From positions 1-64,000 of the forward strand of contig NIVC01000751.1 of assembly GCA_002269645.1 (NCBI GenBank): a DNA stretch of 64,000 nucleotides, in the 5' to 3' direction. Position 1 is the first letter of the stretch, and each line of letters starts with the position of its first letter. The notes beneath the pieces were generated by a model. It searched no databases. It was not told the DNA's origin and was given only the letters and a program-made list of their open reading frames with translations. The stretch comes from Macrostomum lignano. Taxonomy: Eukaryota. Shown here piece after piece: positions 12,223 to 38,600 of the stretch. Position numbers and translations under genes: made by a program.

Positions 12223-14429
12223 ATGGACTATTCAACAGCAGACAAGCAGCAGCTGATAGACAAGATCAAAGAACGTGACCATAAAATTGAACGCTATGAG
12301 AAGCGACTCACAGGTAAAGTGCTCTACTCAAACTTGCAGTCACTTTCAGATAGCTAGATAAGAATCTATCTAAACATTTTGCGCCTGTGCTCATCACTTC
12401 AAACCAACAGATGTTGTTGTCGCATTCAAAAATCTACAAAAAGAGAAAGCCGCCCTGGAGGACACTCTTCAGCAGGTGAATTTTGCTTCTACGAGCAGAA
12501 ACAAGCGACCTAGTCCGCATAGGACTGCCGCCTCAACTACTGCTGAGACTACAAATGATGAAGGAGAAGATGATTCATCCGCTGGTGTCACCTCAGAAGC
12601 TGCCGAGGCTTACGAAGCTCGCATAGCTAAACTGTTAGAAAGCGTGAACGCTTTGACTCAACAGAAAAACGAATTGTCTGCCACTTATCAGGCTGACAAA
12701 CGGATTCTCAGGGTCAGTTTGATTTTGCACTAATTGTAATGTTTTGTTCGACCTGTCCTACCAGATCCCCACAGCCCTGTCTCCCAGATCCCTACAGCCC
12801 TGTCTCCCAGATCCCCACAGCCCTGTCTCCCAGATCCCCACAGCCCTGGCTCCCAGATCCCCACAGCCCTGTCTCCCAGATCCCCACAGCCCTGTCTCCC
12901 AGATCCCCACAGCCCTGGCTCCCAGATCCCCACAGCCCTGTCTCCCAGATCCCCACAGCCCTGTCTCCCAGATCCCCACAGCCTTGTCTCCCAGATCCCC
13001 ACAGCCCTGTCTCCCAGATCCCCACAGCCCTGTCTCCCAGATCCCCACAGCCCTGGCTCCCAGATCCCCACAGCCCTGTCTCCCAGATCCCCACAGCCCT
13101 GGCTCCCAGATCCCCACAGCCCTGTCTCCCAGATTTCCACAGCCCTGGCTCCCAGATCCCCACAGCCCTGTCTCCCAGATCCCCACAGCCCTGGCTCCCA
13201 GATCCCCACAGCCCTGTCTCCCAGATCCCCACAGCCCTGTCTCCCAGATCCCCACAGCCCTGGCTCCCAGATCCTCACAGCCCTGTCTCCCAGATCCCCA
13301 CAGCCCTGGCTCCCAGATCCCCACAGCCCTGGCTCCCAGATCCCCAAAGCCCTGTCTCCCAGATCCCCACAGCCCTGTCTCCCAGATCCCCACAGCCTTG
13401 TCTCCCAGATCCCCACAGCCCTGTCTCCCAGATCCCCACAGCCCTGGCTCCCAGATCCCCACAGCCCTGTCTCCCAGATCCCCACAGCCCTGTCTCCCAG
13501 ATCCCCACAGCCCTGGCTCCCAGATCCTCACAGCCCTGTCTCCCAGATCCCCACAGCCCTGTCTCCCAGATCCCCACAGCCCTGTCTCCCAGATCCCCAC
13601 AGCCCTGGCTTCCAGATTCCCACAGCCCTGTCTCCCAGATCCCCACAGCCCTGGCTCCCAGATCCCCACAACCCTGTTTCCCAGATTCCCACAGCCCTGT
13701 CTCCCAGATCCCCACAGCCCTGGCTCCCAGATCCCCACAGCCCTGTCTCCCAGATCCCCACAGCCCTGTCTCCCAGATCCCCACAGCCCTGGCTCCCAGA
13801 TCCCCACAGCCCTGGCTCCCAGATCCCCACAACCCTGTTTCCCAGATTCCCACAGCCCTGGCTCCCAGATCCCCACAGCCCTGTCTCCCAGATCCCTACA
13901 GCCCTGTCTCCCAGATCCCCACAGCCCTGGCTCCCAGATCCTCACAGCCCTGTCTCCCAGATCCCCACAGCCCTGGCTCCCAGATCCCCACAGCCCTGGC
14001 TCCCAGATCCCCACAGCCCTGGCTCCCAGATCCCCAAAGCCCTGTCTCCCAGATCCCCACAGCCCTGTCTCCTAGATCCCCACAGCCCTGTCTCCCAGAC
14101 AACCTTGTCTTCACACTAGCAACTTGAAACTCCATCCAAACCTACCTCTTCGCACCCGCAGGAAGAGTTTGAGCACACAATAGCTGAGCAGAAGCGCGAC
14201 CTGGAGTCCTGTGCCATTGTTCGACGCGATCTTGAGGCTCAATTGAACGAATTTAGATCCCGCGCCAGACAGCAGGCCAAGGTGGAGCAGGACACCAGTG
14301 CGCTTAGCTCCCGGCTGGCTGCAGAGACTGCGGCTAGAGAGGAGGTGAGTCTGTGTCTGTCTGTCTGTCTGTCTTAGTGTCTGTCTGTCTTAGTGTCTGT
14401 CTGTCTGTCTGTCTTAGTGTCTGTCTTAG

Positions 14430-14484
<55 letters not shown>

Positions 14485-14669
14485 GTGTCTGTGTGTCTGT
14501 CTGTCTGTCTGTCTTAGTGTCTGTCTGTCTGTCTGTCTTAGTGTCTGTCTGTCTGTCTGTCTTAGTGTCTGTCTGTCTGTCTGTCTTAGTGTCTGTCTGT
14601 CTGTCTGTCTTAGTGTCTGTCTGTCTGTCTGTCTGTCTGTCTTAGTGTCTGTCTGTCTGTCTGTCTTAG

Positions 14670-14720
<51 letters not shown>

Positions 14721-17700
14721 ATTGGCGCTCTTGCATTTGCTCAGGAGTCAGCGGAAAGTGCAGAATTGCCGTTAGCGCTGGTTGTGAGCCGATGTCGCCA
14801 AAGACGTTGCGCCAGGATGTCCATGGTGGTGGTTTGATTAAGAGTCCGTCTGTCTCTCAGCCAGTCTCAATCGACCTTCACCGCACCGCAGGCGGAGTCG
14901 CAGCTGGCCGACCTTCGCCGCCAGCTGTCGAATGCCAGCCGCTCCCTGACCAGCCAGGAGGCGTCGCACCGCAGAGCCGTGGCGCAGCTGGAGCGCTCGA
15001 TGGAGTCGCGCTTGGCCGAGGCGGCGGCCAGCACGGGGCAGCGGGAGAGCCGGTCGGACGAGCTGGAGGCCCGCGTGGCCCAGCTGGCGGCCAGCTTGGG
15101 CGAGGCCGAGCGCCGACGGCAGGTGAATAGTGACGAAATCTTCTTTTAACTTACTTTTGGCTGGCCTAAAAAGCGGGAATGTTTTCTACTACTTTTATTA
15201 GTATAATACAAAATCAGCGTCAGCATCTCCCAGTTTGAGCACTGGCATCTGAGCATCTCCCAGTTTGAGCACTGGCATCTCAGCATCTCCCAGTTTGAGC
15301 ACTGGCATCTCAGCATCTCTCAGTTTGAGCACTGGCATCTCAGCATCTCTCAGTTTGAGCACTGGCATCTCATCATCTCCCAGTTTGAGCAGTGGCGTCT
15401 CAGCATCTCCCAGTTTGAGCACTGGCATCTCAGCTTCTCCTATTTTTAGCACTGGCATTTCATCATCTCCCAGTTTGAGCACTGGCATCTCATCATCTCC
15501 CAGTTTCAGCAGTGGCGTCTCAGCATCTTGAGCATCTCCCAGTTTGAGCAGTGGCATCTCAGCATCTCCCAGTTTGAGCAGTGGCATCTCAGCATCTCCC
15601 AGTTTGAGCAGTGGCGTCTCAGCATCTTGAGCATCTCCCAGTTTGAGCAGTGGCATCTCAGCATCTCTCAGTTTGAGCAGTGGCGTCTCAGCATCTCCCA
15701 GTTTGAGCAGTGGCATCTCAGCATCTCCCAGTTTGAGCAGTGGCATCTCAGCATCTCCCAGTTTGAGCAGTGGCATCTCAGCATCTCCCAGTTTGAGCAG
15801 TGGCATCTCAGCATCTCCCAGTTTGAGCACTGGCATCTCAGCATCTCTCAGTTTGAGCACTGGCATCTCAGCATCTCTCAGTTTGAGCACTGGCATCTCA
15901 TCATCTCCCAGTTTGAGCAGTGGCGTCTCAGCATCTCCCAGTTTGAGCACTGGCATCTCAGCTTCTCCTTTTTTTATCACTGGCATTTCATCATCTCCCA
16001 GTTTGAGCACTGGCATCTCATCATCTCCCAGTTTGAGCAGTGGCATCTCAGCATCTCCCAGTTTGAGCAGTGGCATCTCAGCATCTCCCAGTTTGAGCAG
16101 TGGCATCTCAGCATCTCCCAGTTTGAGCAGTGGCATCTCAGCATCTCTCAGTTTGAGCAGTGGCATCTCAGCATCTCCCAGTTTGAGCAGTGGCATCTCA
16201 TCATCTCCCAGTTTGAGCAGTGGCATCTCAGCATCTCCCAGTTTGAGCAGTGGCATCTCAGCATCTCCCAGTTTGAGCAGTGGCATCTCAGCATCTCCCA
16301 GTTTGAGCAGTGGCATCTCAGCATCTCTCAGTTTGAGCAGTGGCGTCTCAGCATCTCCCAGTTTGAGCAGTGGCATCTCAGCATCTCCCAGTTTGAGCAG
16401 TGGCATCTCAGCATCTCCCAGTTTGAGCACTGGCATCTCAGCATCTCCCAGTTTGAGCAGAGCCTTACAAAATATCTAACTTGATAACTTTTAACTAAAC
16501 TACCAGGCCGACGCGCGATCGGCTGGCCGACTTCGCGAACGTCTTGAAGATTTGGACCGCGAGAATCGGGAACTGCGATTGCAGCTTCAGAATGCTGCTT
16601 CTGCTGCTTCTGCTGCTTCTACTGCTTCTGCTGCTGACTGTGGAGGAGGCAGCAGCGGCGGTAGTGGAGGAAACAGTTCAGCTGTACATCCTGTAGCAGT
16701 TGTGGAACCAGTTCAGCGAAGGTCGCTAGCTCAGGTTGGTGTTTGCGCATGATTCAATCAATCAATCAAGTTAAAATAAGCATAGAAAAATTATTATTTT
16801 TCTTCAGCAACTTTCTACAGAATCAGCTAAATCTGACGAGGCCTATTCGTTGGCGTACTTATATAGCAGCTCCGGGGCGGCCAACCAATCAGATCCGACT
16901 GCTGATGAGCTGCACTCCGCCTGTCAGGAGCAGGTCTGTCTGCAATTGAAAAATTCCCTTTGGAAATAATTCCCTATGTGTCATCTGAGAATAAATTCCC
17001 CTCAGCGTTTCATATGGGAATAAATTCCCCTTAGTGTGTCACCTGAGAATAAATTCCACTCAGTGTGTCATCTGAGAATAAATTCCCCTCAGTGTGTCAT
17101 CCGAGAATAAATTCCCCTCAGTGTGTCACCTGAGAATAAATTCCCCTCAGTGTGTCAACTGAGAATAAATTCCCCTCAGTGTGTCATCTGAGAATGAAAT
17201 CCCCTTCAGCGTGTCATCTGAGAATAAATTCCCCTCAGCGTGTCATCTGAGAATAAATTCCCTCCAGTGTTTTATCTGAGAATAAATTCTCCTCAGACAG
17301 TGTGTCGTCTGAGAATAAATTCCCCTTTATAAAATCAGAGATTAAATTCCCCTCTATACCAGCAGAGAATAAATTCCCCTCTATACCAGCAGAGAATAAA
17401 TTCCCCTCTACAACATTAGAGAAAAAATTCCCCTCCATACCAGCAGAGAATAAATTCCCTTCTACAACATTCGAGAAAAATTCCCCTCCATACCAGCAGA
17501 GAATAAATTTCCCTCTATACCAGCAGAGAATAAATTCCCCGAGTCAGAGCAACAATTTCACTTTCACGCCCCCAACTTGCTACTATCAGTAGGCACACTC
17601 TACATTGAACTGATTCAACAGATTCGCGAACTGCGCGCCGAGCTCGACTCCTGCCGTCTGCGTCTGCTGACCGCTCCGCCGACTCCGCCGGCCCTCGTGT

Positions 17701-19428
17701 TTTCGCACACACAGCCGCCACCGTTTCCTCAACAACAGCAGCAACAGCAGCAGCAGTCCGAGCTTCAACGTCTTCAACGCGACCTTCGCAACTGTCGCGA
17801 GCGCTGCCAATCGTTGGAAGCCGACGCTGCCAGCCGGGACCGGGCGCAGCAGGAGCGCCTGGCTACCGCGGAGCGTCGGCACCGAGACGAAATGGCCTCG
17901 CTGAGACGGGAGCTCACGGCCAGGGCGCTTGAGGCCGAGGCGGAGCTGGCCAAGCATCGGGATCGAACCCTGCGCCTGCTGGCTGAGAAGGACGCCGAGT
18001 TGAAGGAGGCTCAGCGAGTTCCTGCTGCTTCGTCGACCGGAAGGACTGCATCGGTGTCGGCGGCGGCGGCGGCGGCGGCGGCTGCTGGCGGCAGCAGCGA
18101 GGCTGACGAAACCCTGCTCGTGAGTGCAAAAGCATGCTTCACGGTTTCTTTCTTTATTCACCCCAGTCTTCACTTTTCCCAGCTCTGTATTCTCCTAAAG
18201 TGCACACCGAGTTCTTCATCGTCTCCACACCCCAGTCTTTTAAATTACGCAATGGTCTTTCTCATCTCAAATCCCAGTCTCTTCTAAAGTACGCACTACT
18301 CTTCATCCTCCAACCCAGTGGTCGTAAAGGACACAGAGCTCTTCACCCACACCCCAGTCTCTCAAAGTACACAGAGCTCTTTACCCTCCACCCAGTCTCT
18401 AAAAGTACTCAGATCTCTGCTCTCCACATTAGTCTCTCAAAGTATCCAGAACTCTTCACCCCACCCTAGTCTACCAAAAGTACACGGAGCTCTTCACCCC
18501 CACCTTAGTCTACCAAAAGTACACGGAGCTCTTCACCCCCCACCTTAGTCTACCAAAAGTACACAGAGCTCTTCACCCCCACCCTAGTCTACCAAAAGTA
18601 CACGGAGCTCTTCACCCCCACCCTAGTCTACCAAAAGTACACAGAGCTCTTCACCCCCACCCTAGTCTACCAAAAGTACACAGAGCTCTTCACCCCCACC
18701 CTAGTCTATCAAAAGTACACAGAGCTCTTCACCCCCACCCTAGTCTACCAAAAGTACACAGAGCTCTTCACCCCCACCCTAGTCTACCAAAAGTACACAG
18801 AGCTCTTCACCCCCACCCTAGTCTATCAAAAGTACACAGAGCTCTTCACCCCCACCCTAGTCTACCAAAAGTACACAGCTCTTCACCCCCACCCTAGTCT
18901 ACCAAAAGTACACAGAGCTCTTCACCCCCACCCTAGTCTACCAAGAGTACACAGAGCTCTTCACCCCCACCCTAGTCTACCAAGAGTACACAGAGCTCTT
19001 CACCCCACCCTAGTCTACTAAAAGTACACAGAGCTCTCTCCAACTTCCAGCTATCCAACTTGCGGTCCGGAGCAGCCGCATGCGCCAGTGTGCACTCTCA
19101 GCTGGAAGGCGCCCTTGCCCAGGCGGACATGGCAGCCCTGCGCGATGCCCGTCGCCAAGCCGAGCACCGGCTGCGCTGCCTGCAAGCTGAACTGGCCGAA
19201 CAGCGCCAGATCATCGCCGATCTCCGAGTCCAATTAGCCAGGTGCCAGCAGCCGACTCAAGAGTCCGTCGAGTACGTGCGCAATCTGGTTTATCGCTACC
19301 TCACCCTGTCGGACGATGGCCGGACTAAGAGAACAGTGCTAACAGCGATGTGTACCGTGTTGAATTTCTCTGATTCTGAACGGCACAAAGCGTTGCAGAA
19401 ACAGTTTCCAACGTCTTCGTGGTGGTGA
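12223..19428 (+). CDS. GCC1: GRIP-domain golgin GCC1/GCC88, ~678 aa; exons 12223-12313, 12411-12712, 14162-14344, 14892-15122, 16507-16734, 16808-16933, 17622-18119, 19051-19428
   Basis: All junctions are GT-AG and phase-consistent. N-terminus [45 protein letters not shown] and the GRIP domain [12 protein letters not shown]...[11 protein letters not shown]...SWW resemble GCC88. Confidence 0.88.
12760..14100. repeat. 23-bp minisatellite in GCC1 intron 2 (CCCAGATCCCCACAGCCCTGKCT)
   Basis: Over 50 copies. Confidence 0.95.
14351..14720. repeat. (TGTC)n microsatellite with TTAG interruptions, GCC1 intron 3
   Basis: Direct reading. Confidence 0.95.
15215..16460. repeat. 30-bp minisatellite in GCC1 intron 4 (CAGCATCTCCCAGTTTGAGCASTGGCATCT)
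   Basis: About 40 copies. Confidence 0.95.
16975..17545. repeat. ~30-bp minisatellite (GAGAATAAATTCCCCT core) in GCC1 intron 6
   Basis: Two sub-variants in succession. Confidence 0.9.
18320..19038. repeat. 39-bp minisatellite in GCC1 intron 7 (AGAGCTCTTCACCCCCACCCTAGTCTACCAAAAGTACAC)
   Basis: About 14 good copies plus degenerate 5' copies. Confidence 0.95.
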
Positions 19429-21670
19429 CGACGGTATTTTAAAACAAATTATTTTTTTCTTCAAGCGAGTTACTACTCAGTCTTCTCTACTACAAGTAGA
19501 AAAGTAAGAAAATTTTATGGACCTAAGTTTTCTTTTTCTTGGATTTGCAGTTCTTTATTTGCATTTTATTGTACTGAACCATGATAGAAAGTTACTTATG
19601 ACTTGTTTCATTACTCATTTCACAACTTTCATGACTTTAAAAGATAATATGTTTATTTACTCCCGTTATTTTGTTAAAGAAGTAGGCTCTGAAGTTTGTA
19701 TATCATTTTATGCGCCTTGTATTCCGCATTCCTATGTCTAAACATTGTTTGATTATTTCCTGTGCTTTTAGGTTTTATTGTTCTTCCACATTTTACTTTT
19801 AGAATTGTATGCAGTTTCAACTTGGAATGGGGTTCTTCAATATGATCATATGCCAAACCGAGCATACATATAGTAAGTAACATATATATCTTTAATTTAA
19901 CACAACGCGAACCGTAAAAACTGCATAAAAGGTACAGTTTTGTTTAAACTGTTTCACTTTCAGTCGTTTAATTGGAATGTATTAATATTATACTTTCAGA
20001 TTTTCATTTGACACACTATACTCGCAATGCCCTTGTCGGATACTGTGTAGCTTGTACTTATTATTTATTCATTATGGCCTTTTGAGTCTTTAACAGACCG
20101 GAGTAATCTCAACTCAGGCTTTGCGATGCAAAATATGGATTCAATCAATCTAATGCTAAATGCCAATATACGCTCCTATATAAAAAAAGCAAAAGCAGCC
20201 TCTCGTGAGTCAGGCTATATTTGTGCAAGTCAAAAACAAAGATTAAACTAATCTCGATTCAATTTTTCAGTATGCACTATAAACATTGCGTATGCGTTTT
20301 CATCTACACTACATAAGATAAATACTTGCTTACATATATGTATGGAGATCTGAACTACATGTACAATGTTGGAATTAATTCATTTTAACCCTTCAAACTT
20401 TGTCCAACATCATTGGATCTACACGATACACAAAAACAAAAGAATTCTACATGTCAAATCATTTCACATGTAGATGTTTAGATGTCCTTGGACCTTGCGA
20501 CATGTTACATAGGTGTTAGCTGGAAGATTAGAAATAGTCTTTAAATACGAAATTTGTTTGCGCAGTTTTAAATACGAAAATTAAACTTAATTTTAAGTTA
20601 CGCAAAAGTAACCATAAAAAATTATACAATAAACTGCGTATTTTGATAACTTTGTTTAGCTAGGTATTAACAAAAACGGCTTATTTATACAGTTCCTAAA
20701 TGAATTTGTTAATCTTGTGCTTTTTTCTATTTTTAAACTGAGTGGAAACTGCAGAAGGCGGGCCACATCTGCAAGTTAAAAAAAGCTAGTTGAACTGAGC
20801 TGATACTGTAATTATAACTGACGTCATTTGTTTTAGTTAGGCTGTATATAATACGAATAAATTAAGTGCTAGAAAAAAGTTTAAAGAACAGCATTTTTAT
20901 TTTGTAACCTAAAACCAAGTCCGAAGGTAGTTTTTCAGCATTTATAAAAAAATTGAGGCTTATTCCGCAACATGGAAGAGTATACAAGAGATCCTTGGTA
21001 AGTTAGATGACAAAGTCGGCGATGTCTAATGAAATGAATTCATTCCCTATGTGCTTTTTTCTTTAGTATAGGCCTAGCCGCCTAGAAAGCAATTACCAAT
21101 GACAATGTTTAGTTTTGCTGTACTTTTAGGGCCCCTTAAGTTTTAATACTTGAAAAATTGTTGCTATAGCTTAGCCTAGTCAAGCAGTTCATCTTTTCAT
21201 GACTGAAAATAATTAGGCCCTAGTAGGATGCAAGTTAAAAGTGCTAATTTCAGTGCTATGGTAGAACTCACTTTAGCCTAGGCCTATTCCTACCCATAGT
21301 CAGGATCATGCTGTGTGCACCAGAAGCCACCCCAAAAATTTTTTTGGTGTGTGCCAGGTATGCCAGGCAAAATGCACAAGTGCGCCAGTTGCGCCAGTCC
21401 TAAATCCTAATCATAATGTAAAAAAAATGTGCAATATACACAAAATCACAATATATTATAAGTTGTACATAATGTTTTGTGTAATTGCAAGCAAAGATTA
21501 GGCCCTATCAATTGAAGATTTGAAAATTTATGTTTTTAATTTCAGGAATAAAGAAAAAAGGAATAAAACACAACTTAAAGAATATTTTAAATGAAGAAAT
21601 GGTTGTCAATTGTTACAATAAATTTGCAAAATCATGGTTAAACTTTGTGCAAAATTTGATGCCTTATATA

Positions 21671-22498
21671 CGAGGGGTGTCCCAAAAGTTCCCGGAATGT
21701 CTAACGTAGCTCTTCAACAGAGCCATGAAATTTCATGCCCATGGTGTCAAATGAAAGGAAATTTTGTCACAAAGAATACAAAGTTAAAATCATGTTGATA
21801 TCTTTTTTTATTCAAGAGCTACAGCAAGAAACTTGCGCAAAGGTCAGGGGTAGTGTTACACAACCTCAACAATCTATGGCAATAATTTTTTCATCTCCAT
21901 TTTTGGAGTTTTTCATTTTGAATTCATTCACAGCAGACTGGCCATCTCTAAAGTGTTCAATCCATCTATAAATTGCAGTTTTTTTCAGGCTGTTCTCACC
22001 GTGGATGGAAAATAAGTGGTCAGAAATCTTGGCTCCACTCCATCCTACTGACCAAAAGGCAAAAACTTGACTTCGCTGACTTTCAAGGCTCTGAAGAGAA
22101 CTCATTTTTGCAAAGAAATTTCAAGTTGAAAGCAAGCGCTTGGTACGAATTATCTGCACTCGCGCAAAAGCTCAGATTAGCTTTATGAGCATTTCTGCTT
22201 TTTTCCATAGACACTACCATGTCTTTCTGACATGTCAGTAGCACGAATTCAAAATGAAAAACTCCAAAAATGGAGATGAAAAAATTATTGCCATAGATTG
22301 TTGAGGTTGTGTAACACTACCCCTGACCTTTGCGCAAGTTTCTTGCTGTAGCTCTTGAATAAAAAAGATATCAACATGATTTTAACTTTGTATTCTTTGT
22401 GACAAAATTTCCTTTAATTTGACACCATGGGCGTGAAATTTCATGGCTCTGTTGAAGAGCTACGTTAGACATTCCGGGAACTTTTGGGATACCCCTCA
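21671..22498 (-). mobile_element. Non-autonomous mariner-family element with ~255-bp TIRs, TA TSD and a frameshifted transposase N-terminal remnant
   Basis: TA|CGAGGGGTGTCCCAAAAG at the left end and CTTTTGGGATACCCCTCA|TA at the right. TIRs 21671-21926 and 22245-22498 are near identical. Minus strand encodes QALAFNLKFLCKN and IHGENSLKKTAIYRWIEHFRDGQ (mariner HTH-like). Confidence 0.88.
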
Positions 22499-24294
22499 TA
22501 CTTTACATTCTTTGATTTTGTCTTTCGCAGTAGCCGTGGTATAGCCTCCTCATGTGCGCCATGCAGTATGTGCTATGTGTGTGTGCCATGTAGGGTGCGC
22601 CAATTGTATATACGACAAAGTGTATACTAGAAGACCCTTTCAAAAATTTTGTGTGCCAAGTGTATGCTAGCTATCCCAAATGTGCACCGGAAATTTCTGA
22701 CATACATGACATGATCCTAAGTGTGGATTCCTACGGCTATGGCTATAATTTATAATGTTATGTAGGCCTACTTTACAAATTATTAATACCATTAAGTCCA
22801 GGATTAGAAAACAGCTTAGGCACTAATTAGACATGTTATGACAAGCTATCAGTTAGGCTTAATCAAATTAGTTTTATCAATTATCATAGCTATGGATATA
22901 GCTATTACAAGAAGGGATTATATTATATCCATTTTCATTACTAGGGCCAAGCAAAAATCTAGGATAGAATTTTTGTACAAAATGATAGATACATTCTGTG
23001 TGCACTAATAAAAATTTTGTAGTTGTGCAATTTTTTGTAAAAATCTTATCTTATGTAACAAGAAAACTAGAATTTGAAGTTAGCATGAAATGTTTCAAAA
23101 AGTTTATATTTTACTTGTAACATATAAGAAAGTTTTTAGATAAAAGAGGCAATTGTCTTCCTAAAAGGTCATTGTTGGTTTTCTTAGAAATGATTTCCAG
23201 TCCTTTAATTATTTTAAGTATCAGCTTTTTAGTTCATGTCAATAGAAATTTTTACTCTTTCATTATATTTTGTGGCTCTTTTCATACAATAGGAGTACAA
23301 GCTATGCTCACAAAGTAAATGTCCATAGACATTTGCAGCTCAGCAGCCATGAATGGCTTGTAAATAAAGAACATTTGTTAACTAAATAAAAGTTCATTTA
23401 TTAATGACTATACTCTATTACTAAATAGTCTTTAATTTTAACCATAATTATTATAAAGTAATAAATGAAATTAAAGTAGTCTACAATATGAGCTTAGGCT
23501 CATTGCTCTTTATAACTATAAATATATAAAACATAAATTTATTTTATGATTTTAAGAAATCTAGCTTAGTTTTGTAGCTTTGTCCTTTTTGGATTAAATA
23601 TCTAAATCATTTTATTCTAGTAATAAATTTTCAAAATTGACAATGCAATGGAAAGTATGCAAGATCTCTGGACCTCTATAGGCTATAGAAAAGTCTGTCT
23701 TGTTCCCATTCCCAATAAATCATTTGTTCCCATGACACCAAAATGCTTATGCTTAAGCCATTATGCTTAGTCAGTACCACATATACTACAAGGTCATAAA
23801 ATAACTAGACTGGCTACTTAGCACATTTACATGTAAACTATTTTCAGTTCAGTAGTAAGTTGAACTGAAGTATTTTAATGTATTTTATAAGACAAGGCTC
23901 ATTAATTGGCTTTTACCCCTCAGCTTAAACCTTCCAACCATGTCCATACCTTTTGAGTTTTCACACTATCCCTGCCCTGCCCCAATTTTTATTGTCTTTC
24001 TTGGATTTCCAACCTAAAGCTGCCATGTACATTTCAGTGGACTGGCCAGTGTACATTATTGCTGAACCAATTAGCAAGTTTGTTTACGCCTGTAAGCTTT
24101 TGGGCTTCTAAACCTTATCAAAGTCATTTCAGCTGCCTTTATTTTTATAAAATAGCTTATGTATTCTTCTTTGCTACTGAACTAAAAGCAGGAAGCTGTT
24201 TTACTAAGTATAAATGCCTGAGTGGCCCATCTAGCTATTTTAGAATCTGTGTTCCACATAAGCTTATGTAATACCACAATAAGATATTTGGAAA

Positions 24295-24789
24295 ATGATT
24301 GCATATAAGCCTGTGGAAGTCATTGTGCCTCCCGCCAACCATTATTGTCGAACCAGCCCGTGGCGCATTGTATCTGATCTTGGCGGCGCCTACACAATGG
24401 GCGCTATCGGCGGCACTCTGGTGTACTTTTACAAAGGCTACCGTACTGCTCCATCCAGCCAGCACATGCGCCTGATCTCGGCTCTGTCCAACGTGCGCCA
24501 ACGAGCCCCGGCTTTGGGTGGCGCTTTCGCAATGTGGGGCGGCACTTTTGCAACCACCGAGTGCTCGTTGATCTACCTGCGACAGAAAGAGGACCCGTAC
24601 AATAGCATCATGTCTGGCGCCGCGACCGGAGCTCTGCTAGCTGTGCGGCAGGGACCGGCCGCGATGGTTGCTCAAGCTCTGATTGGCGCAGTGCTGCTGG
24701 GCCTGATTGAAGGCATGGGCATCGTGTTCACCAGGATTATGCCCAGCATTCTGGCTGCCGAGGCTGAGGCTGCGGGTGGGGCTGGGTAA
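24295..24789 (+). CDS. TIMM17: Mitochondrial inner-membrane translocase subunit Tim17, single exon, 164 aa
   Basis: [48 protein letters not shown] and LLGLIEGMG follow the Tim17 signature. Confidence 0.93.
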
Positions 24790-24844
24790 GCAGCTAGCTA
24801 GGCTGAGCACTTCTTGATGCACTGGAGCCTAGATGCGCAGTCCA

Positions 24845-25330
24845 GTCATCATATCCCCCAGCCATCGTATCCTCCATCTCCCCTAGCCATCATATCCCCC
24901 GGCCATCATATCCCCGGCCATCGTATCCTCCATCTCCCCTAGCCATCATATCCCCCGGCCATCATATCCCCGGCCATCGTATCCTCCATCTCCCCTAGCC
25001 ATCATATCCCCCGGCCATCATATCCCCGGCCATCGTATCCTCCATCTCCCCTAGCCATCATATCCCCCGGCCATCATATCCCCGGCCATCGTATCCTCCA
25101 TCTCCCCTAGCCATCATATCCCCCGGCCATCATATCCCCGGCCATCATATCCCCGGCCATCATATCCCCCAGCCATCGTATCCTCCATCTCCCCTAGCCA
25201 TCATATCCCCCGGCCATCATATCCCCAATCTCCCCAATATCCCTCATCCTCATCGCCCAAATATCCCCATCTCCCCAATATCCTCATCTCCCCATTCCTC
25301 CAACATCCCTAACCATCATATCGCCCATCC
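24845..25330. repeat. Compound repeat (GCCATCATATCCCC / GCCATCGTATCCTCCATCTCCCCTA) 3' of TIM17
   Basis: Direct reading. Confidence 0.9.
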
Positions 25331-25898
25331 ATCATTACCTCCATCTAGATCTGTAGTTTTATAGAACACCTAAAAGCTGCCGGGGACAGCTATAAAGGTT
25401 TCTAAAAGTTTCTAAATTGCGTTTTAAAAGCCTCTAGCCTTGGTGACAGTTTTTTAAACATAATTAGATATCAAAGTAGATACCCATCTACCCGTGTATT
25501 ACTGCCTGTCTTGTTTTGTAACTGTTAGTTTCATGAAATTTCTTCTTAAACTTAAAGCGGCTAAATTAGTTAGTTGGTTCTGTTTATTCAGCGGCGATAA
25601 AGTTTGCTAGTTAACACAAATCAAAATCTTGTCATGTTTGTCTGAAGCCATCATTTTTTAGTTGAAGTTTAGTGCAAAAAGAAGCGCAGTCTACTCGATC
25701 AATAAGTAAGCGGCACTAACGACAGACTGCAGTGCATTGGTTTCCTTGCTAAGTGCGATTTACGAGCGTATATGCAGCTATTTTCTTTAATAATAGAAAT
25801 ATTAATTACTATTATAATAATTTTTTTTGTATCGCAAAGGAAGATCTTTTTGGTACAAAACTGCGAAACAAATCTATAAATTGCATATTATATATATA

Positions 25899-25904
25899 AA
25901 TAAA
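25899..25904 (+). promoter_or_regulatory. Candidate polyadenylation signal (TIM17?)
   Basis: First AATAAA seen after the TIM17 stop, followed by a U/GU-rich tract at 25918-26000. Confidence 0.4.
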
Positions 25905-26054
25905 AAGCTAGCTTGAATTTGTTTATCTCTGTCTCTTGTCCGTTTCTGTGGCAAGCTTTGTAGATTGGTCTTGCTCATTTTTACTGTTTGCATTGTGTTT
26001 AGGAGGCTCTAGTTGTTGGTATTGCGACAGAAGAGATCATTGTTCCCCATTTGG

Positions 26055-27595
26055 GAACTACAGAGGGGGTCATTGTCCTATTTAAGAGCTACAGAGGGGT
26101 CATTGTCCTTTTTAAGAGCTACAGGGGGATCATTGTCCTATTTAAGAGCTACAGAGGGGTCATTATCCTATTTAAGAGCTACAGAGGGGTCATTGTCTTA
26201 TTTAAGAGCTACAGAGGGGTCATTGTCCTATTTAAGAGCTACAGAGGGGTCATTGTCCTATTTAAGAGCTACAGAGGGGTCATTGTCCTATTTAAAAGCT
26301 ACAGAGGGGTCATTGTCCTATTTAAGAGCTACAGAAGGGGTCATTGTCCTATTTAAGAGCTACAGAGGGGTCATTGTCCTATTTAAAAGCTATAGAGGGG
26401 TCATTGTCCTATTTAAAAGCTATAGAGGGGTCATTGTCCTATTTAAGAGCTACGGAGGGGTCATTGTCCTGTTGTCCAATTTAAGAGCTACAGAGGGGTC
26501 ATTGTCCTATTTCAGAGCTACAGAGGGGTCATTGTTCTATTTCAGAGCTACAGAGGGGTCATTGTCCTATTTAAAAGCTATAGAGGGGTCATTGTCCTAT
26601 TTAAGAGCAACAGAGGGGTCATTGTCCTATTTAAGAGCTACAGAGGGGTCATTGTCCTATTTAAGAGCTACAGAGGGTCATTGTCCAATTTAAGAGCTAC
26701 AGAGGGTCATTGTCCAATTTAAGAGCTACAGAGGGGTCATTGTCCTATTTAAGAGCTACGGAGGGGTCATTGTCCTATTTAAGAGCTACGGAGGGGTCAT
26801 TGTCCTGTTGTCCAATTTAAGAGCTACAGAGGGGTCATTGTCCTATTTCAGAGCTACAGAGGGGTCATTGTTCTATTTCAGAGCTACAGAGGGGTCATTG
26901 TCCTATTTAAAAGCTATAGAGGGGTCATTGTCCTATTAAAGAGCAACAGAGGGGTCATTATCCTATTTCAGAGCTACAGAGGGTCATTGTCCAATTTAGG
27001 AGCTACAGAGGGGTCATTGTCCAATTTAAGAGCTACGGAGGGGTCATTGTCCAATTTAAGAGCTACGGAGGGGTCATTGTCCTATTTAAAAGCTACGGAG
27101 GGGTCATTGTCCTGTTGTCCAATTTAAGAGCTACAGAGGGGTCATTGTCCTATTTCAGAGCTACAGAGGGGTCATTGTCCTATTTAAAAGCTATAGAGGG
27201 GTCATTGTCCTATTTAAAAGCTATAGAGGGGTCATTGTCCTATTTAAAAGCTATAGAGGGGTTATTGTCCAATTTAAGAGCTACAGAGGGGTCATTGTCC
27301 AATTAAGAGCTACGGAGGGGTCATTGTTCTATTTCAGAGCTACAGAGGGGTCATTGTCCTATTTAAAAGCTATAGAGGGGTCATTGTCCTATTTCAGAGC
27401 TACAGAGGGTCATTGTCCAATTTAAGAGCTATAGAGGGGTCATTGTCCTATTTCAGAGCTACAGAGGGGTCATTGTCCTATTTCAGAGCTACAGAGGGGT
27501 CATTGTCCTATTTAAGATCAACAGAGGGGTCATTGTCCTATTTAAGAGCTACAGAGGGGTCATTGCCATATTTAAGAGCTACAGAGAGTTCATTG
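26055..27595. repeat. 30-bp minisatellite directly upstream of the first Rab9 coding exon (GAGGGGTCATTGTCCTATTTAAGAGCTACA)
   Basis: About 50 copies; no ATG seen in the unit. Confidence 0.95.
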
Positions 27596-27617
27596 TCACT
27601 GTAAATTATATTTACAG

Positions 27618-29182
27618 CCGCGCTCCCAGCTTCTAAAGGTCATCTTACTTGGCGACGGTGGCGTCGGCAAGTCGTCTCTAATGACGCGCTACGTGCACCA
27701 GCGCTTCGATCAGCGACCGCAGCACACTATCGGTGTTGAGTTCTTAGTTAAAGAGCTTACTATTGATGGTATGCATTTTACTCTGCAGATTTGGGACACT
27801 GCGGGACAGGAGAGGTATCGATCTTTGCGGACTCCATTTTACAGGTGATTATGATTAGCTGTCTTAAAAGCTGGGCTTCACAGAGCAGAGAATGGGGTGG
27901 GTGCCCAACAGGGCAGAGAGTGGGGTGGGTGTCGGAAAGGGCAGAGAGTGGGGTGGGTGTCGGACAGGGCAGAGAGTTTGGTGGGTGTCGAACAGGGCAG
28001 AGAGTGGGGTGGGTGTCGGACAGGGCAGAGAGTTTGGTGGGTGTCGAACAGGGCAGAGAGTGGGGTGGGTGTCGAACAGGGCAGAGAGTGGTGTGGGTGT
28101 CGAACAGGGCGGAGAGTGGTGTGGGTGTCGAACAGGGCAGAGAGTGGGGTGGGTGTCGAACAGGGCAGAGAGTGGGGTGGGTGTCCAACAGGGCAGAGAG
28201 TGGGGTGGGTGTCGAACAGGGCGGAGAGTGGTGTGGGTGTCGAACAGGGCAGAGACTGGGGTGGGTGTCCAACAGGGCAGAGAGTGGGGTGGGTGTCGAA
28301 CAGGGCAGAGAGTGGTGTGGGTGTCGAACAGGGCGGAGAGTGGTGTGGGTGTCGAACAGGGCAGAGACTGGGGTGGGTGTTAAACAGGGCAGAGAGTGGG
28401 GTGAGTGTCGGACAGGGCAGAGAGTGGGGTGGGTGTCGAACAGGGCGGAGAATGGGGTACGTGTCGAACATGGCGAAGAATGGGGTGAGTGTCGAACAGG
28501 GCAGAGAATGGGGTGGGTGTTGTACGGCGGAGAATGGGGTGAGTGTCGAACAGGGCAGAGAATGGGGTGGGTGTTGTACGGCGGAGAATGGGGTGGGTGT
28601 CGAACAGGGCAGAGAATGGGGTGGATGTTGCACAGGGCGGAGAATGGGGTGGGTGTCGTACAGGGCAGAAGGTGGGGTTGGTGTTGCTCTTAAATCTAGC
28701 GAACCCCGCAAACCACCCGCCGCAGAGGCGCAGATGCGTGCATCCTAGTGTATGCCCTAGACGATCGCCGCTCCTTCACCAACGTGGACATGTGGCGCCA
28801 GGAGTTCTTTCACTACTCCGACGTACTGGAAAGTGACGGGCAGAAGTTCCCGTTCCTGCTAGTTGGCAATAAAAGCGACGTAGAATTGGCCGAAGTGTCA
28901 GTGGAAGATGCCGATGCGTGGGCCAACCAGTACGGCATGCGGCATCTGACTGCCTCGGCTAAAAGTTCTGACAATGTTGACGCCGCTTTCAGTCACGTTG
29001 CGGCCGCGTGGTTGGCCCGGGCCAAAGCTGAAGCGGCTACGGCGGAGGCTGCAGCCGCAACTTCGTCAACTGCAGCGACTTCCACAGGGAGGATTCGAGT
29101 GCGAGCTGGTGGTGACGGCGGGAGCTCCTCCGGTCAGCTTGGTGGCAGCGGCGGCAAGAGGAGCGGCTTTGGCTGCTGCTGA
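27618..29182 (+). CDS. RAB9: Rab9 GTPase; exons 27618-27844 and 28726-29182; initiator ATG not located
   Basis: [55 protein letters not shown] and a terminal CC prenylation motif; phase-2 intron consistent. Confidence 0.92.
27885..28680. repeat. 28-bp G-rich minisatellite in the Rab9 intron (GGGCAGAGAGTGGGGTGGGTGTCGAACA)
   Basis: Direct reading. Confidence 0.95.
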
Positions 29183-29425: not shown

Positions 29426-31067
29426 CGCCAGCCTTCCTTCTTAACTCTAAAAACTATTTTTTGTGCTTTTTTAAAGTTTAAAACGATATTTTAACGATCA
29501 CAACGACATGCTTGTAATCATTCTTGTGTAGACGCAATTATTTTCTATTATTTTCAGACATTTTCGTATGCCAATGTATTGCTAAACAAGCTAAATATTT
29601 ACTGCCTAGATTTTGGTGTCTGAAACTTTGTAATAAAGCCTTGATTTCCTTCGATTCAGATAATGCCTTTCGTGTATGCATGCGCGTCATTTGCTACTTG
29701 TGTAATGAATATAGTGGACCTCACAGCAGTAGTTAGTTGGTACCGGACTGCTTGTTTTCATTAACCCAATCCAATATGCGTATGTCTGATTATTCTGATG
29801 CTTTTTCGGTAATTTTTATCTTTAATTGTATGATGAACTTGTTTTGAATCTCCTATACTAATTCAGTTTGTGAGGTTAATTAAAGATTACTTAATACTAA
29901 CTAATCTGAATCATGATACTTGAAGTATTTGTGCTAAATCTGTTTTTCGACCCGACTCGTACTGCAAATAAATCATTTATTTCAGCAGATTTTGTAGATT
30001 TGCTGTCAAAAGAAATCGCTTTATTTTTGTACGCTACTTACAGTAGTTTTGGTTAGCCTGTGCTGTTTTTGATTGATTATTTCTCTGGTGGCTGGTATTT
30101 TCACTGTCTGGAATAGCTTTGTTTGTGTTTTTCATCTTGGAGACTTAAAACTTTCTTACATGCATGTACACATGTCTTGATTAATTTCCACCCCCTTCAC
30201 TGTCATTTAAAAATAATAATTTGGAGACATGAAGTAAAATTGCAGATTTGTTGCTCAAGGGACGCATGCTACAAAATACTGGTTGCAATTTCTCTGTATA
30301 GTGGTAATCTGGAATACACTAACTGTATTTTCATTTTATTTCTGTTACACACTATATATTTTCAGAGTTTTATATTTATTTTGCCAACACTTAAACAGTA
30401 TATTAATTTTCATTCAATTATTTATTGTGCAAATCTTTTTTGGCGATGCAAATTTATTAAAAAATGTCTATATTTACTGCTGACATGGGTAGTTGACCAG
30501 TAGCATGTATAGTACAGATATACGCATGCCTTTTAAAATTTATATTCAAGCTTATACACATGTCTTTATTCCATTCTGTGTTAAAAAATAATGAAAGAAT
30601 TTATTTTCACTGGATTTATTTTCCATTTTTCAACAAAAGAAATAAATAAACCTTAATTAAAAAACGAAAAGTTGTGCAATTAAAAAAAACTATTTTATTT
30701 CGTTTCGTTTGCTTGTGCCAGTTTCGCCTGTACCTATAGTGGTAAAAAACGACTTTGCAGATTAAACTACAATTGTTGTAGGCTAAAAACTAAATCGAAA
30801 CGAATCATTAAAAATTATCCGCTAATAGTCTAATACAGCGTTTTGCAGTTACGCGCGTTGAATTTAATACAATACAAGATACGTTTGCCAATGGAATGGA
30901 GCTTTTGTCCATGGTAGCAAGGCTGGCCAATTTTTTATTTTTAACATTTAATTGGTCCAACAAGTATCAATGGTCCAAACGCTCGTACGTTTGACGGGCT
31001 GATGGATGCTGTAAAAATCAGCTGAGTGTTTTAAGCTGAGGAGCTAATGAATTATTGAACTGAGACA

Positions 31068-34132: not shown

Positions 34133-35684
34133 AAGGTTGACAGATTTTTTAAGATTTCAAGGCTTATAGGGCATTGATAATGATGTCAAAGGGATTGATA
34201 TGCTAAGGCTTATGGGGGGATTTTCTGACATGTCAAGGCTTACAATGTATAATGCAAAGAGAGGCTTACATGTAGTTTATTAAAAAAACTTGTACTGCAT
34301 TTTTTGGCTCCCCAACGGGGGGTGCTGATTGCTAGTATTAGCTATTTGTCTATATTGGTCACTTATTTTCCTTACCTTAATACTTTTTGGTTGAATTTTC
34401 CTAAGACAAAAAGATAGCAAATGGATGTTTTCTTAAGAGCTCAACTGCTCTTTATTTTTAAATAATCCTGTATAACCCCAACTATCCTAATTACTAATAT
34501 TTATGCAACTGAAAAACTACTGTCAGTAGTGTAAAAGCAAATATTATCCCATTCTTAAATTATGCCCTATTATATTTTCAATAAGCCATTAAATATTAAG
34601 AAGACAATGCCCTCCCAAAAAAAGTTCAATTGCTCTCCTAGCTTTGCTCTAGCCATACCTGCCTAGGTCTATTATTGAATTCTCTTTGAGATTTAGACCC
34701 ACAAAATTGTTTGTTGCAGCATTGTACTAGGCTAGGATAGAAGAGAACAAGCATATGCAAGTGTGCAGATACAAATGCTAACATGTATTCATATACTTAT
34801 TCATGTGTTTATGTTGCATGTAAGTAATTTTTAGCTGCTATTCTAGGTATAATTCTATTTTATTTTGTATTGGTTCCCACTATATGCATATATACAATTA
34901 GTTATATAACTTTGAAATTATTTTTGCTTATATTTATACTATATTTTTTCTTAAAATTGGCCTCTAAAAATGACACAATCTTTGAGTTTTTTTATGTTCT
35001 ATACTAGTAGCAGTCCTTGTGTTAGGCATGCAAAATCTACCTTTGGGATTGGCCTTTTTTAATATAAAGTACATAAAAATTCTTAGCCTAATTTTGTGCA
35101 AGGCTAAAATGAATGTGGTTGAGCACCAAATTGAACCAAGGGTTTTGGTACAAGAGTTAGATGCTATTGTATTGTTGCTACACTTGTGCAATTTGCCCCA
35201 ATCATAACATAAGAACCTAGGTTATATAGACTAATAATTTTCAATTATTTTTGCATCTATGAAGCACTTATAAGTAAGTTTCTTTTGAATAATACAATAA
35301 TAATACAAGCTCTAAGAGTCCCAGTTTTGTATTTTTCCCAGCTGGTGTATTATGCATTCCAGATATTATCCACAATATTCTAGCTTATTATGTTATTATT
35401 GTACAATCGAGGCAACTTACATTATTACTTGTAATAATTAATGAAAGGCTTAGGGAAAAAAGATTATTATAAACCTTAAAGATTCCAGAATATCAAACGA
35501 CTCATCCAATTGAGCTGTTTATAGTTTTTTGTATGCAATCCAGGTGTCTTATTTAATGTTTCCTTCAAAATATCTTTTTAAAAATTTACTGACCAGCCTA
35601 CTTATGCTATAGAAGTAGTCATTAAGAAAAATAGCAATTATTGATACTTTTAAACCCTATTTCTAAACTGTCTTTGTTCATTGC

Positions 35685-38600
35685 ATGTCTTCTTTTTGCG
35701 CCAGCGAAGAAGATGACAGTAGCGGCGCCGCCGCCGTCGACACTGAAGCCACTCCAGCCGTTGCCATAGCAACCTCAGTATTGAGTCCCAATAGTACCGG
35801 GGCCTCATTTCACACGGCTACGTCTCCTGATGGCGGCGGCATGGCGGGCATCGGCGAGGAGCAGCTGGTGTACTCCGATGACGACGTGGCAGGCGAAGAT
35901 CAGGACAGAGGCGGCAGCGCCGCCGACAATCTCGACATTCACGCCGACATGTCGGACGACGAGCTGAACAGTTCCAAGGGTCGGGCCGCTGCTAAGGAGG
36001 CGGTGGGTATTGGGGTCGAGTTTTGATTTGGAATCCCAGTTTCCATTGCTTCATTTTCTTCCGAGTCGGTTAGCTCCAATCCCCAGGGGGCACAGAGTTA
36101 AAAGTCAAGGTCCGCTTTGCACCCTGTGTGAGTGTGTGGAATGTGCGTGGCTGCTGGCTTGATCAATGATTTGTGACAGCGCTAAATGCCTCTCTTCAAA
36201 CTTTCTAATTCATACCATAGCAATCATAATCCCAAGCCATGGCAACAAGTATCCCCCGTCCCATAGCAACAAGACATCCCATGGCAAAAAGGATCCCATT
36301 CCATAGCAACAAGACACCCAGTCCCATAGCAACAAGACACCCAGTCCCATAGCAACAAGGATCCCATCCCGTAGCAACAAGACACCCAGTCCCATAGCAA
36401 CAAGGATCCCCGTGCCATAGCAACAAGACACCCAGTCCCATAGCAACAAGGATCCCATCCCGTAGCAACAAGACACCCAGTCCCATAGCAACAAGGATCC
36501 CCATGCCATAGCAACAAGGTATCCAATTCCATGGCAACGAGGATCCCAATTCTTTAACAGCAAAAAATCCTATCCCATGAAAAATGTATCCCAATGTCAA
36601 AAGATTAATTTTACGTTCGTTTTCTATAGTGCATCTGTCATCCAGTATCTTTATTACCTATGTTCGAAGCTTCCTAGTACATGCTTAATCCTGCTTCAGT
36701 CAATTATTAAAATTGATTAATTCCAGGGACATCAGAGCAGAGGCGAGAAACGCTCATCAGCTGCAGCTAAATCAGTATCCACAACCGCATGTTCAAAGTC
36801 TGACAGTCCTACTAGGAATAAGATCGCTTCTCAAAAAAGGGAGGGCGAAGACGGTGAACCTCCTGCTAAGAAAGCCGAAATCGATGTAGCTGGTGAGAAA
36901 TATTTTATACTATTTTATTTCAATGTACGCAGAGCCCCCCCACTCCCGGCAATGTACGTACAGCCCCACCTCACTTCCTGCAATGTACACACAGCCCCAC
37001 CTCACTTCCTGCAATGTACACACAGCCCCACCTTACTTCCCGCAATGTACACACAGCCCCACCTCACTTCCTGCAATGTACACACAGCCCCACCTTACTT
37101 CCCGCAATGTACGTACAACCCCACCTCACTTCCCGCAGTGTACACACAGCCCCACCTCACTTCCTGCAATGTACACACAGCCCCACCTCACTTCCTGCAA
37201 TGTACACACAGCCCCATCTCACTTCCCGCAATATACACACAGCCCCACCTCACTTCCCGCCCACTCTGCCGTCGATAGAAGTCCGACAACGTAAACCGCG
37301 TCAGCGTCGAGGCGCATGGGGCTTGAAGAAGCAGTCGCAGCAGCAGACACAGCAGAGCAATGGTAGCGCAGCGTCGGCCACCGCTGCAAATGCCGCAACT
37401 CCTCTGCCTCTGATCACATCGAAAGTTTTGGACGTGAGTCTGAATTGTTGCATAGTTACTGCTAATGCCTTCCCGCCTTTCGTTAGTTTAGCCTGAACGT
37501 TTTAGACACTCAGTTGCCGGGCCAGCCTCCCAGATCCTCAGTTGCTGGGCGAGCCTCCCAGAGTGTCAGTTACTGCGCCAGCCTCCCAGATCCTCAGTTG
37601 CTATGCCAGCCTCCCAGAGTGTCAGTTACTGGTCCAGTCTCACAGAGTGTCAGTTGCTATGCCAGCCTCCCAGCTCCTCAGTTACTGGTCCAGTCTCCCA
37701 GAGTGTCAGTTGCTAGGCCAGCCTCCCAGATCCTCAGCTGCTTACTGCATCCCATACTACAGAAGCTGCTCCCAGACTGCAGAGCTGAGCTCAAAGCCCG
37801 GCTTCGGAACGGTCGACCAGCCAGCGTCGACGGTGCCGGCTCCGACACTCTGGCGGCGGCGGCCACCAACGGCGAGAGTCATGACCTCGGCAATGGAGAT
37901 CTGGAGGAAGGCGAAGTGTACGACGCCAACCAGCAGCTGCTGAGCCTGCGTCGGCGTCAACGCGACGCTTCGAGATCGCCGTCTCAGAAACGTCAGGTGA
38001 TTCGTCGAACTAAAGTGGTGGACTATCAGGTTGACGAGCCGATTCGAGTGGGTCCGACTCGAGATTCGGAGAATAAGGAGACCCAGGTGAGGATGCGTGT
38101 CGATTGTTTGAACTTTGACCTTTACAGTTCATTAAACAGTTAAAATAGAGAATTTTTAGACTGAACAGCCGATACAAAGCAAGTTATCCATGTATACTAC
38201 TTACTAAGTAGCTTAAAAAACCTTTATGTACTGTAGTCTTTAAAAATTATTGCTCAGGCAATTTCACAGAATAATCATCAATTGGAGGCAATTTTCCCAA
38301 AGGAATCATTAATGGGGGAGGGAAGATTTTTTCAGAAGAATCATTGATTAATTTGGGGCGATTTTTTCAGAGGAATCATTGATTTGAGGCGATTTTTTCA
38401 GAGGAATTATTTATGGGGAGTTGGCGATTTTCTCAGGAAATCATTGATAGGGGGCGAATTTCACAGAGGAATTATAAATTGGGCGATTTTCACAGAGGAA
38501 TCATTGATGTGGGAGGGGCGATTTTCACAGAGGAATCATTGATGTGGGAGGGGCGATTTTCACAGAGGAATCGTTGATGTGGGAGGGGCGATTTTCACAG

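Follow-up and report, generated by a model that had tools for sequence, protein, structure and literature searches.

How does translation begin on a gene that carries no start codon of its own? The question is raised by the Rab9 gene of the flatworm Macrostomum lignano, on scaffold NIVC01000751.1, of which positions 1-64000 were analyzed (this whole 64,000-nt stretch is called the window; its coordinates are identical to those of the record). On the + strand of the window, the first coding exon of Rab9 opens at a splice acceptor, and the codon at which it opens encodes proline. The answer proposed here, which we regard as very probable, is that Rab9 has no initiator codon in the genome and that its AUG is supplied by a trans-spliced spliced leader (SL). 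The mechanism is an established one, known in flatworms since 2006, and Rab9 of M. lignano is a correct but ordinary, routine example of it.

An Exon without an Initiator Codon

The anatomy of the sequence, the species, the 5'-partial annotation at the acceptor, the arrangement in five gene copies and the fit of the N-terminus to orthologs were observed directly. Coding exon 1 of Rab9 extends from 27618 to 27844 on the + strand; it has no initiator codon, begins at Pro2, and contains the P-loop GDGGVGKS and the switch II motif WDTAGQE. From 27618 it reads, in phase 0, CCG CGC TCC CAG CTT CTA AAG GTC ATC TTA CTT GGC GAC GGT GGC GTC GGC AAG TCG, and it ends at 27844 with TAC AG|GTGATT. The acceptor region in front of it (27598-27617, + strand; actgtaaattatatttacag) is an A/U-rich tract ending in TTACAG|, and the sequence upstream of the 27617/27618 boundary reads ...ATATTTACAG| (also given as ...aaattatatttacag|). 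An in-frame TAA at 27573-27575 (+ strand), 45 nt 5' of the exon, closes the frame in unspliced RNA.

Where are the nearest ATG triplets? A script scan of the + strand placed the last upstream one at 25772 and the following ones at 27681, 27766 and 27771, with none from 25775 to 27680. The ATG at 27681 is the first in-frame ATG of exon 1 and encodes Met23 in GKSSLM, just past the P-loop. The solid core of the observation is that not one in-frame ATG lies between the in-frame stop at 27573 and the P-loop. Direct reading of the first 12 codons finds AAG and AUC as the only in-frame near-cognate codons. Further upstream, the donor AA|GTAAGC, with its GT at 25706, is preceded by a TAA at 25703-25705. 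A preliminary description of this DNA had already stated that the exon opens in phase 0 at a U/A-rich acceptor, that the + strand holds no ATG between about 25775 and 27618, that the first ATG of the exon follows the P-loop, and that an in-frame TAA precedes the donor at 25706; the present coordinates bear out each of these statements. Unspliced RNA cannot make Rab9, because an in-frame UAA lies 45 nt 5' of the exon, no AUG lies between the two, and the first AUG of the exon falls past the P-loop.

Coding exon 2 (28726-29182, + strand) encodes the C-terminal prenylation motif GCC and ends with a TGA at 29180-29182, so that the open reading frame (ORF) has 227 codons, ending ...GFGCC-TGA, and its spliced product is identical to the annotated protein (P0123). 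The two exons are separated by the sole intron of the gene (27845-28725, + strand; 881 nt, phase 2, GT...AG), nearly all of which consists of a G-rich 28-bp satellite; the intron measures 881, 434 and 763 nt in three copies of the gene.

Identity of the Gene and Fit of Its N-Terminus

Rab9A and Rab9B are small GTPases of traffic from the late endosome to the trans-Golgi. Is the gene in the window one of them? A protein search returned 100% identity to the M. lignano 'Ras-related protein Rab-9A', and among the best 120 matches every Rab-named metazoan protein is Rab-9A, Rab-9B or Rab9, at 49-60% identity. Matches in Pfam are to Ras, Roc and Arf, and in the alignment the G1-G5 motifs, including SAK, are invariant, with the GCC prenylation motif at the C-terminus. 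Judged by its sequence, the gene is the M. lignano ortholog of Rab9. Compared with Rab9A and Rab9B, the protein shares 50-60% identity in the GTPase domain, an invariant P-loop, switch II, NKxD and SAK, and the CC end; it differs in its hypervariable C-terminal tail, which is Ala/Ser/Gly-rich and about 25 residues longer, and in the lack of a genomic start codon.

The alignment of ten Rab9 proteins also bears on the missing start codon. With an initiator methionine added, the N-terminus MPRSQLLKV is flush with those of the orthologs (MSKSSLLKV, MSGKSLLLKV): it equals amphioxus Rab9 in length and lacks one residue relative to vertebrate Rab9, in agreement with the preliminary description, which had predicted an N-terminus one residue short of that of human Rab9. 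The N-terminus agrees with those of the orthologs only if the methionine of the SL is counted.

A Spliced Leader Ending in AUG

What could donate this methionine? The SL sequence, the acceptor motif, the method of annotation and the ability of a flatworm SL AUG to initiate translation are taken from the literature. M. lignano has a single 35-nt SL, CGGTCTCTTACTGCGAAGACTCAATTTATTGCATG, whose last bases are ...ATTGCATG and whose 3' end is ATG (Ustyantsev & Berezikov 2021, PMC8629364); the AUG-ending flatworm SL that the preliminary description had invoked therefore exists in this species. About 30% of M. lignano genes are trans-spliced and about 15% lie in operons, and the species motifs are [T/C]TNCAG for the trans-splice acceptor and GT[G/A]AG for the donor (PMC8629364). 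The Rab9 acceptor, TTACAG|CCG at 27612-27620, agrees with the former. All flatworm SLs reported so far end in ATG (PMC12582326), and in the genus Macrostomum the final ATG has explicitly been called a likely translation start (Wiberg et al. 2023, PMC10468722). In Schistosoma mansoni, 28% of trans-spliced mRNAs have the SL AUG in frame, and more than 40 cDNAs need it, as Cheng (2006) is cited in PMC9851317. In Echinococcus granulosus, the SL ATG makes 143 of 187 SL-bearing clusters full length, a usage that is conserved among orthologs (PMC3510090).

These data suggest the following course of events. A longer precursor would cover Rab9 as well as genes 5' of it (TIM17 at the least, and probably also a GRIP-domain gene), and SL trans-splicing at TTACAG|, 27617/27618, would make the 5' end of the mature mRNA. 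The 35-nt SL with its 3' AUG would join CCG CGC UCC in phase 0, so that its last three bases become codon 1. The junction expected in mature RNA is ...TTGCATG + CCGCGCTCC at 27617/27618 or, in longer form, ...CAATTTATTGCATG|CCGCGCTCCCAGCTTC, and translation from the SL AUG would yield a product of 228 residues beginning MPRSQLLKV. We infer that SL reads join the exon at 27618, that the SL AUG is the codon used, and that Rab9 belongs to an operon.

The window itself contains no SL RNA gene that matches the 29-nt SL core with three or fewer mismatches. A scan for remnants of the SL gave, without gaps, at most 23/35 matching positions (at 29952), a score that block shuffles do not mark as significant (p ~0.065), and ATTGCATG occurs three times, near chance expectation.

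Annotation at the Acceptor

How was the 5' end of Rab9 annotated? On NIVC01000751.1, the GenBank coding sequence (CDS), PAA77318.1 (BOX15_Mlig004945g3), is incomplete at its 5' end, and its first base is precisely 27618. Three GenBank Rab9 proteins (PAA49617.1, PAA70079.1 and PAA77318.1) have 227 residues, are all labeled 'partial' and start with PRSQ; in all three gene copies, the deposited CDS opens at the first base past the acceptor AG. In the Mlig_3_7 annotation, transcriptional units were assembled and then cut at peaks of SL reads and at poly(A) sites (TBONE), and ORFs were called by TransDecoder (PMC5730564). Cutting a transcript at an SL peak leads to just such a CDS start, at the first base past AG in three copies. 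A transcript extending 5' of 27618 would lead either to an ORF from 27576 or to a 'complete' ORF from the Met at 27681, and neither has been deposited.

A different treatment of the same start is found in UniProt, where A0A1I8I6N5, A0A1I8G149 and A0A1I8IBA1 have 230 residues and start with YLQPRSQ. The three extra residues correspond to TAT TTA CAG (27609-27617) of the outron, and the YLQ start of these entries is an annotation artefact of the SL-dependent start. Since SL-dependent genes are deposited either as 'partial' (PAA77318.1) or with spurious outron residues (A0A1I8I6N5, YLQ), the SL Met should be added by pipelines that annotate flatworm genes or assign their orthology.

Conservation among Gene Copies

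Is an exon without an ATG a peculiarity of one copy? Five copies were compared, namely three near-identical homeologs or alleles (L003, which is the window copy, L004 and L005) and two copies of a paralog (L001 and L002). The paralog is 60% identical, is intronless and lies 3' of an ARID4-like gene, in a different genomic context. The junction AG|CCGCGCTCCCAG (AG|CCG CGC TCC CAG) is present in all five copies; in each, the frame is closed by a stop 33-45 nt 5' of it, and the interval from stop to junction holds no in-frame ATG. The last ~20 nt before the acceptor (ctgtaaattatatttacag) are kept in the three homeologs, and the L004 sequence further 5' is unrelated to that of the window. Because the acceptor-first, ATG-less structure is kept in an old paralog, it points to a functional state and not to an accident of assembly or annotation. 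None of the five copies, the 60%-identical paralog included, has lost the ORF or a GTPase motif, an argument for purifying selection. Two other comparisons carry little information: a search of the intergenic region of the homeologs for constrained blocks was uninformative, the copies being 91-99% identical throughout, and the synonymous/non-synonymous differences among homeologs (5/3, 4/1 and 4/4) are too few to inform.

The paralog has features of its own. A weak collinear alignment with the SL, AGACTgAATT...ATTGC, lies 5' of its acceptor in both copies (L001 9956-9997, L002 20226-20267; p 0.007-0.04 against other AG-ending windows). It hints that the paralog is an old retrocopy of an SL-bearing mRNA; the statistics are unconvincing, and the idea was not adopted. 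The same idea was considered for SL-like sequence 5' of the Rab9 acceptor in the window, where there was no signal (p 0.14-0.45), and was not adopted there either. In L002 (15880-15920, 20268), the deposited protein PAA89222.1 (P0126) is a fusion of 1009 residues in which an ARID4-like exon, CGA AGA AAG|GTTGGT, is joined in frame to the Rab9B acceptor; in the other paralog copy, the same acceptor opens a separate 5'-partial Rab9B model. The fusion reflects either an acceptor common to cis- and trans-splicing or a chimeric model from a polycistronic precursor.

Alternative Sources of the Start Codon

Several points weigh against a start codon donated by the SL. The step from a CDS that begins at the acceptor to an SL peak at that place is deduced from the published annotation method. 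Four M-initiated versions of the protein had no exact match and a 24-mer spanning the SL-exon junction was not found in metagenome contigs, both weak negatives because the collections probably hold no M. lignano transcripts; the Rab9 gene ids were not found in the supplements of PMC5816591 and PMC5730564, which is likewise a weak negative. The Kozak context of the SL AUG is weak, with U at -3 and C at +4. Finally, a 12-codon mini-ORF from the ATG at 25533 to TTA|GTTAGT is in phase with the Rab9 exon and is intact in three copies.

Could this mini-ORF be the true first exon? An upstream cis-spliced mini-exon would provide the ATG at 25533 and 11 further codons, with the donor TTA|GTTAGT (25569) joined to 27618. 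The preliminary description had named it as a weak rival; it is in phase and intact in all copies, and the annotation gives it no support. The ATG, the ORF and the GT are preserved in the three homeologs, within a 300-nt block that is 97-99% identical, but identity of this order is ordinary for recent duplicates. The donor GTTAGT, moreover, departs from the species motif GT[G/A]AG, and none of the three deposited models has an exon 5' of the acceptor, where each begins with a CDS flagged as partial. The mini-exon would also give Rab9 a 12-residue extension unlike the N-termini of its orthologs. The paralog has the same acceptor-first structure in another context. We therefore consider a cis-spliced mini-exon very improbable.

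Is the acceptor at 27618 perhaps used mainly in cis, from an exon of an upstream gene, to give a fusion or read-through transcript? There are precedents, since acceptors are extensively common to cis- and trans-splicing in parasitic flatworms (PMC12582326) and the deposited CDS of the L002 paralog joins ...CGA AGA AAG|GTTGGT in frame to the Rab9B acceptor. However, the only consensus donor in TIM17 exon 2 (GG|GTAAGC, 24786) is in phase 2 and out of frame with Rab9, the ORFs from upstream ATGs through the donor at 25705 (GT at 25706) all reach stops, and no fused model has been deposited for any of the three Rab9 copies. Predominant use in cis appears slightly less probable still than the mini-exon.

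No more credible is the idea that the SL AUG goes unused, the gene being translated from a non-AUG codon or from Met23 (27681) or being an untranslated relic: the weak context of the SL AUG speaks for it, but a start at Met23 would lose the invariant P-loop GDGGVGKS and hence give a dead GTPase, near-cognates in the first 12 codons are limited to AAG and AUC, the intact ORF and GTPase motifs of five copies suggest purifying selection, and in flatworms initiation at an SL AUG in vivo is on record (PMC3510090; PMC9851317).

Comparison with Known SL-Initiated Genes

The donation of the Rab9 start codon by the SL has its closest counterparts in the SL-AUG-initiated mRNAs of Schistosoma and Echinococcus (Cheng, Cohen, Ndegwa & Davis 2006, J Biol Chem 281:733). 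In both cases the SL ends in AUG, a conserved ORF has its codon 2 immediately after the acceptor, a full-length protein is not obtainable from any AUG in the genome, and an ortholog-like N-terminus is obtained only via the SL AUG. The Rab9 case differs in coming from the free-living, early-branching Macrostomorpha and not from Neodermata, and in being known here from sequence and annotation. It would thus extend to a free-living, early-branching flatworm a mechanism documented mainly in parasitic ones, as a clean multi-copy case of a housekeeping GTPase wholly dependent on trans-splicing for its start codon. The SL also contributes the start codon of slORFs (Song et al. 2023, PMC9851317). In contrast to Rab9, in which the SL AUG would open the sole functional and deeply conserved ORF, slORFs are mostly alternative or novel and arise from NUG codons in the SL.

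An SL-Like Octamer at the Next Gene

The next gene downstream of Rab9 encodes an RSB-motif protein, with an annotated CDS start at 35688. Its 5' flank differs among the homeologs, reading ...gttcATTGCATG|TCT in the window and in L005 and ...gttcATTTGCAG|TCT in L004. In the former two, ATTGCATG (window 35680-35687, L005 14189-14196) matches the 3'-terminal 8 nt of the SL without a mismatch and puts an in-frame ATG into the genomic sequence. In L004, ATTTGCAG (19103-19110) is a consensus trans-splice acceptor; no in-frame ATG precedes it, and the first one to follow lies 52 codons into the exon. The two octamers differ by four consecutive substitutions in a 230-nt alignment that is otherwise 96% identical. 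Random mutation explains such a pattern poorly.

How could the end of the SL come to stand in a genomic sequence? The assembly was polished by Pilon with STAR-mapped RNA-seq reads in addition to genomic reads (PMC5730564). Reads with only a few SL bases would align end-to-end, the ATT and the final G being common to both sequences, and would overwrite TGCA with GCAT. The octamer at 35680-35687 is therefore probably an in-silico imprint of SL-exon junction reads, with a real conversion by SL-bearing cDNA as the less likely origin. Under both readings the octamer is a sign that SL-bearing RNA is joined at 35687/35688 and that no distinction is made at this codon between a Met from the SL and a 'genomic' one. 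The site is also a warning, as assemblies polished with RNA-seq can carry the SL over true acceptors and create false genomic start codons.

That ATTGCATG is real DNA in two of the three homeologs, and not a polishing artefact, seems unlikely. If it were real, the initiator Met of one and the same codon would be encoded by the genome in some homeologs and donated by the SL in others, which would amount to a start-codon/acceptor polymorphism, reached either by conversion with SL-bearing cDNA or by a CAG|/CATG| change. Rab9 and its intronless paralog, with the weakly SL-like sequence upstream, would then be further products of traffic between SL-bearing mRNA and the genome.

The ATG-Free Stretch Upstream of Rab9

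Does the long ATG-free stretch upstream of the Rab9 acceptor carry a signal? Most of the intercistronic, or outron, sequence is filled by a 30-bp satellite (26058-27597, + strand; ~51 units, 1540 nt), whose unit contains no ATG and carries CTACAG. The roughly 40 ATGs expected from composition are thus an unfair null, because 1540 nt of the stretch consist of an ATG-less satellite. The unique 283 bases at 25775-26057 are also free of ATG where ~6 would be expected (first-order Markov model, P(0) ~0.004); of 184 control windows, one is likewise without ATG, and CAT occurs five times in the interval, which was picked after the fact. In homeolog L004, an ATG lies 52 nt 5' of the acceptor, so the ATG-free unique stretch is not conserved there. 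The stretch was rejected as a signal, being mostly satellite and for the rest post hoc and not kept in L004; the lack of ATG at 25775-26057 is a curiosity and not evidence, and may be due to chance.

The satellite lies directly 5' of the Rab9 acceptor and has a match to the acceptor motif in nearly every unit. Between 26058 and 27597, [TC]TNCAG is matched 42 times, 32 of them by CTACAG, and these acceptor-like sites could act as decoy acceptors. The copy number of the satellite varies between the three homeologs.

A Probable Polycistronic Context

Which genes would share a precursor with Rab9? TIM17 (20972-24789, + strand; exons 20972-20997 and 24357-24789; PAA77317.1, BOX15_Mlig004945g2; Pfam Tim17) lies upstream and has its own ATG, as has the GRIP-domain gene that precedes it on the same strand (12223-19428, +). 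The locus tags of TIM17 and Rab9 are Mlig004945g2 and Mlig004945g3, and in a homeolog Mlig032386g1 and g2. As unrelated genes share a unit name only when they have been cut from one transcriptional unit, the tags point to such an origin for TIM17 and Rab9. Rab9 looks like the downstream gene of a polycistronic unit, the single precursor being read from the locus-tag naming convention only.

The spacing of the two genes is consistent with an operon. In M. lignano, operons are defined by a repeat-adjusted distance of <1 kb (PMC8629364). From the TIM17 stop (24789) to the Rab9 acceptor (27617) there are 2828 nt, of which 1895 are tandem repeats, leaving a repeat-adjusted 933 nt, within the 1-kb limit; because the mRNA continues past the stop codon from which this distance was counted, the transcripts themselves lie closer together than that. 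A single AATAAA in the interval (25899-25904, + strand), 173 nt from the Rab9 acceptor after subtraction of repeats, is a candidate TIM17 poly(A) signal. Rab9 resembles the genes of SL-resolved operons (C. elegans SL2; M. lignano, Ustyantsev & Berezikov 2021) in having a same-strand upstream gene in one annotated unit, an adjusted distance below 1 kb and a 5' end that would be trans-spliced. It differs from them in its raw spacing of 2.8 kb, with satellites filling the gap, and from the SL2 operons of C. elegans in that nematode SLs give a cap and a 5' untranslated region (UTR) only and no start codon.

TIM17 shows several further features. Its stop codon TAA lies inside a consensus donor, GG|GTAAGC (24784-24791; GT at 24786). 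An in-frame fusion of TIM17 to Rab9 through this stop-overlapping donor was rejected, as the join is in phase 2, reads GRAPSF* and is out of frame. An acceptor-like tttttcag| lies 35 nt 5' of the TIM17 ATG (20930-20972); trans-splicing at this site, if it occurs, would create a 3-codon upstream ORF from the SL AUG, AUG CAU UUA UAA, ahead of the real start. The 3.3-kb intron of TIM17 contains a near-perfect inverted repeat (21669-22500) with arms of ~260 nt (97-100% complementary) around a 319-nt core, which looks like a foldback or MITE-like (miniature inverted-repeat) transposable element. Finally, C-rich tandem repeats of 56 bp and 17 bp (CATCATATCCCC...) extend over 24847-25294, starting 58 nt past the TIM17 stop, and presumably lie within the TIM17 3' UTR.

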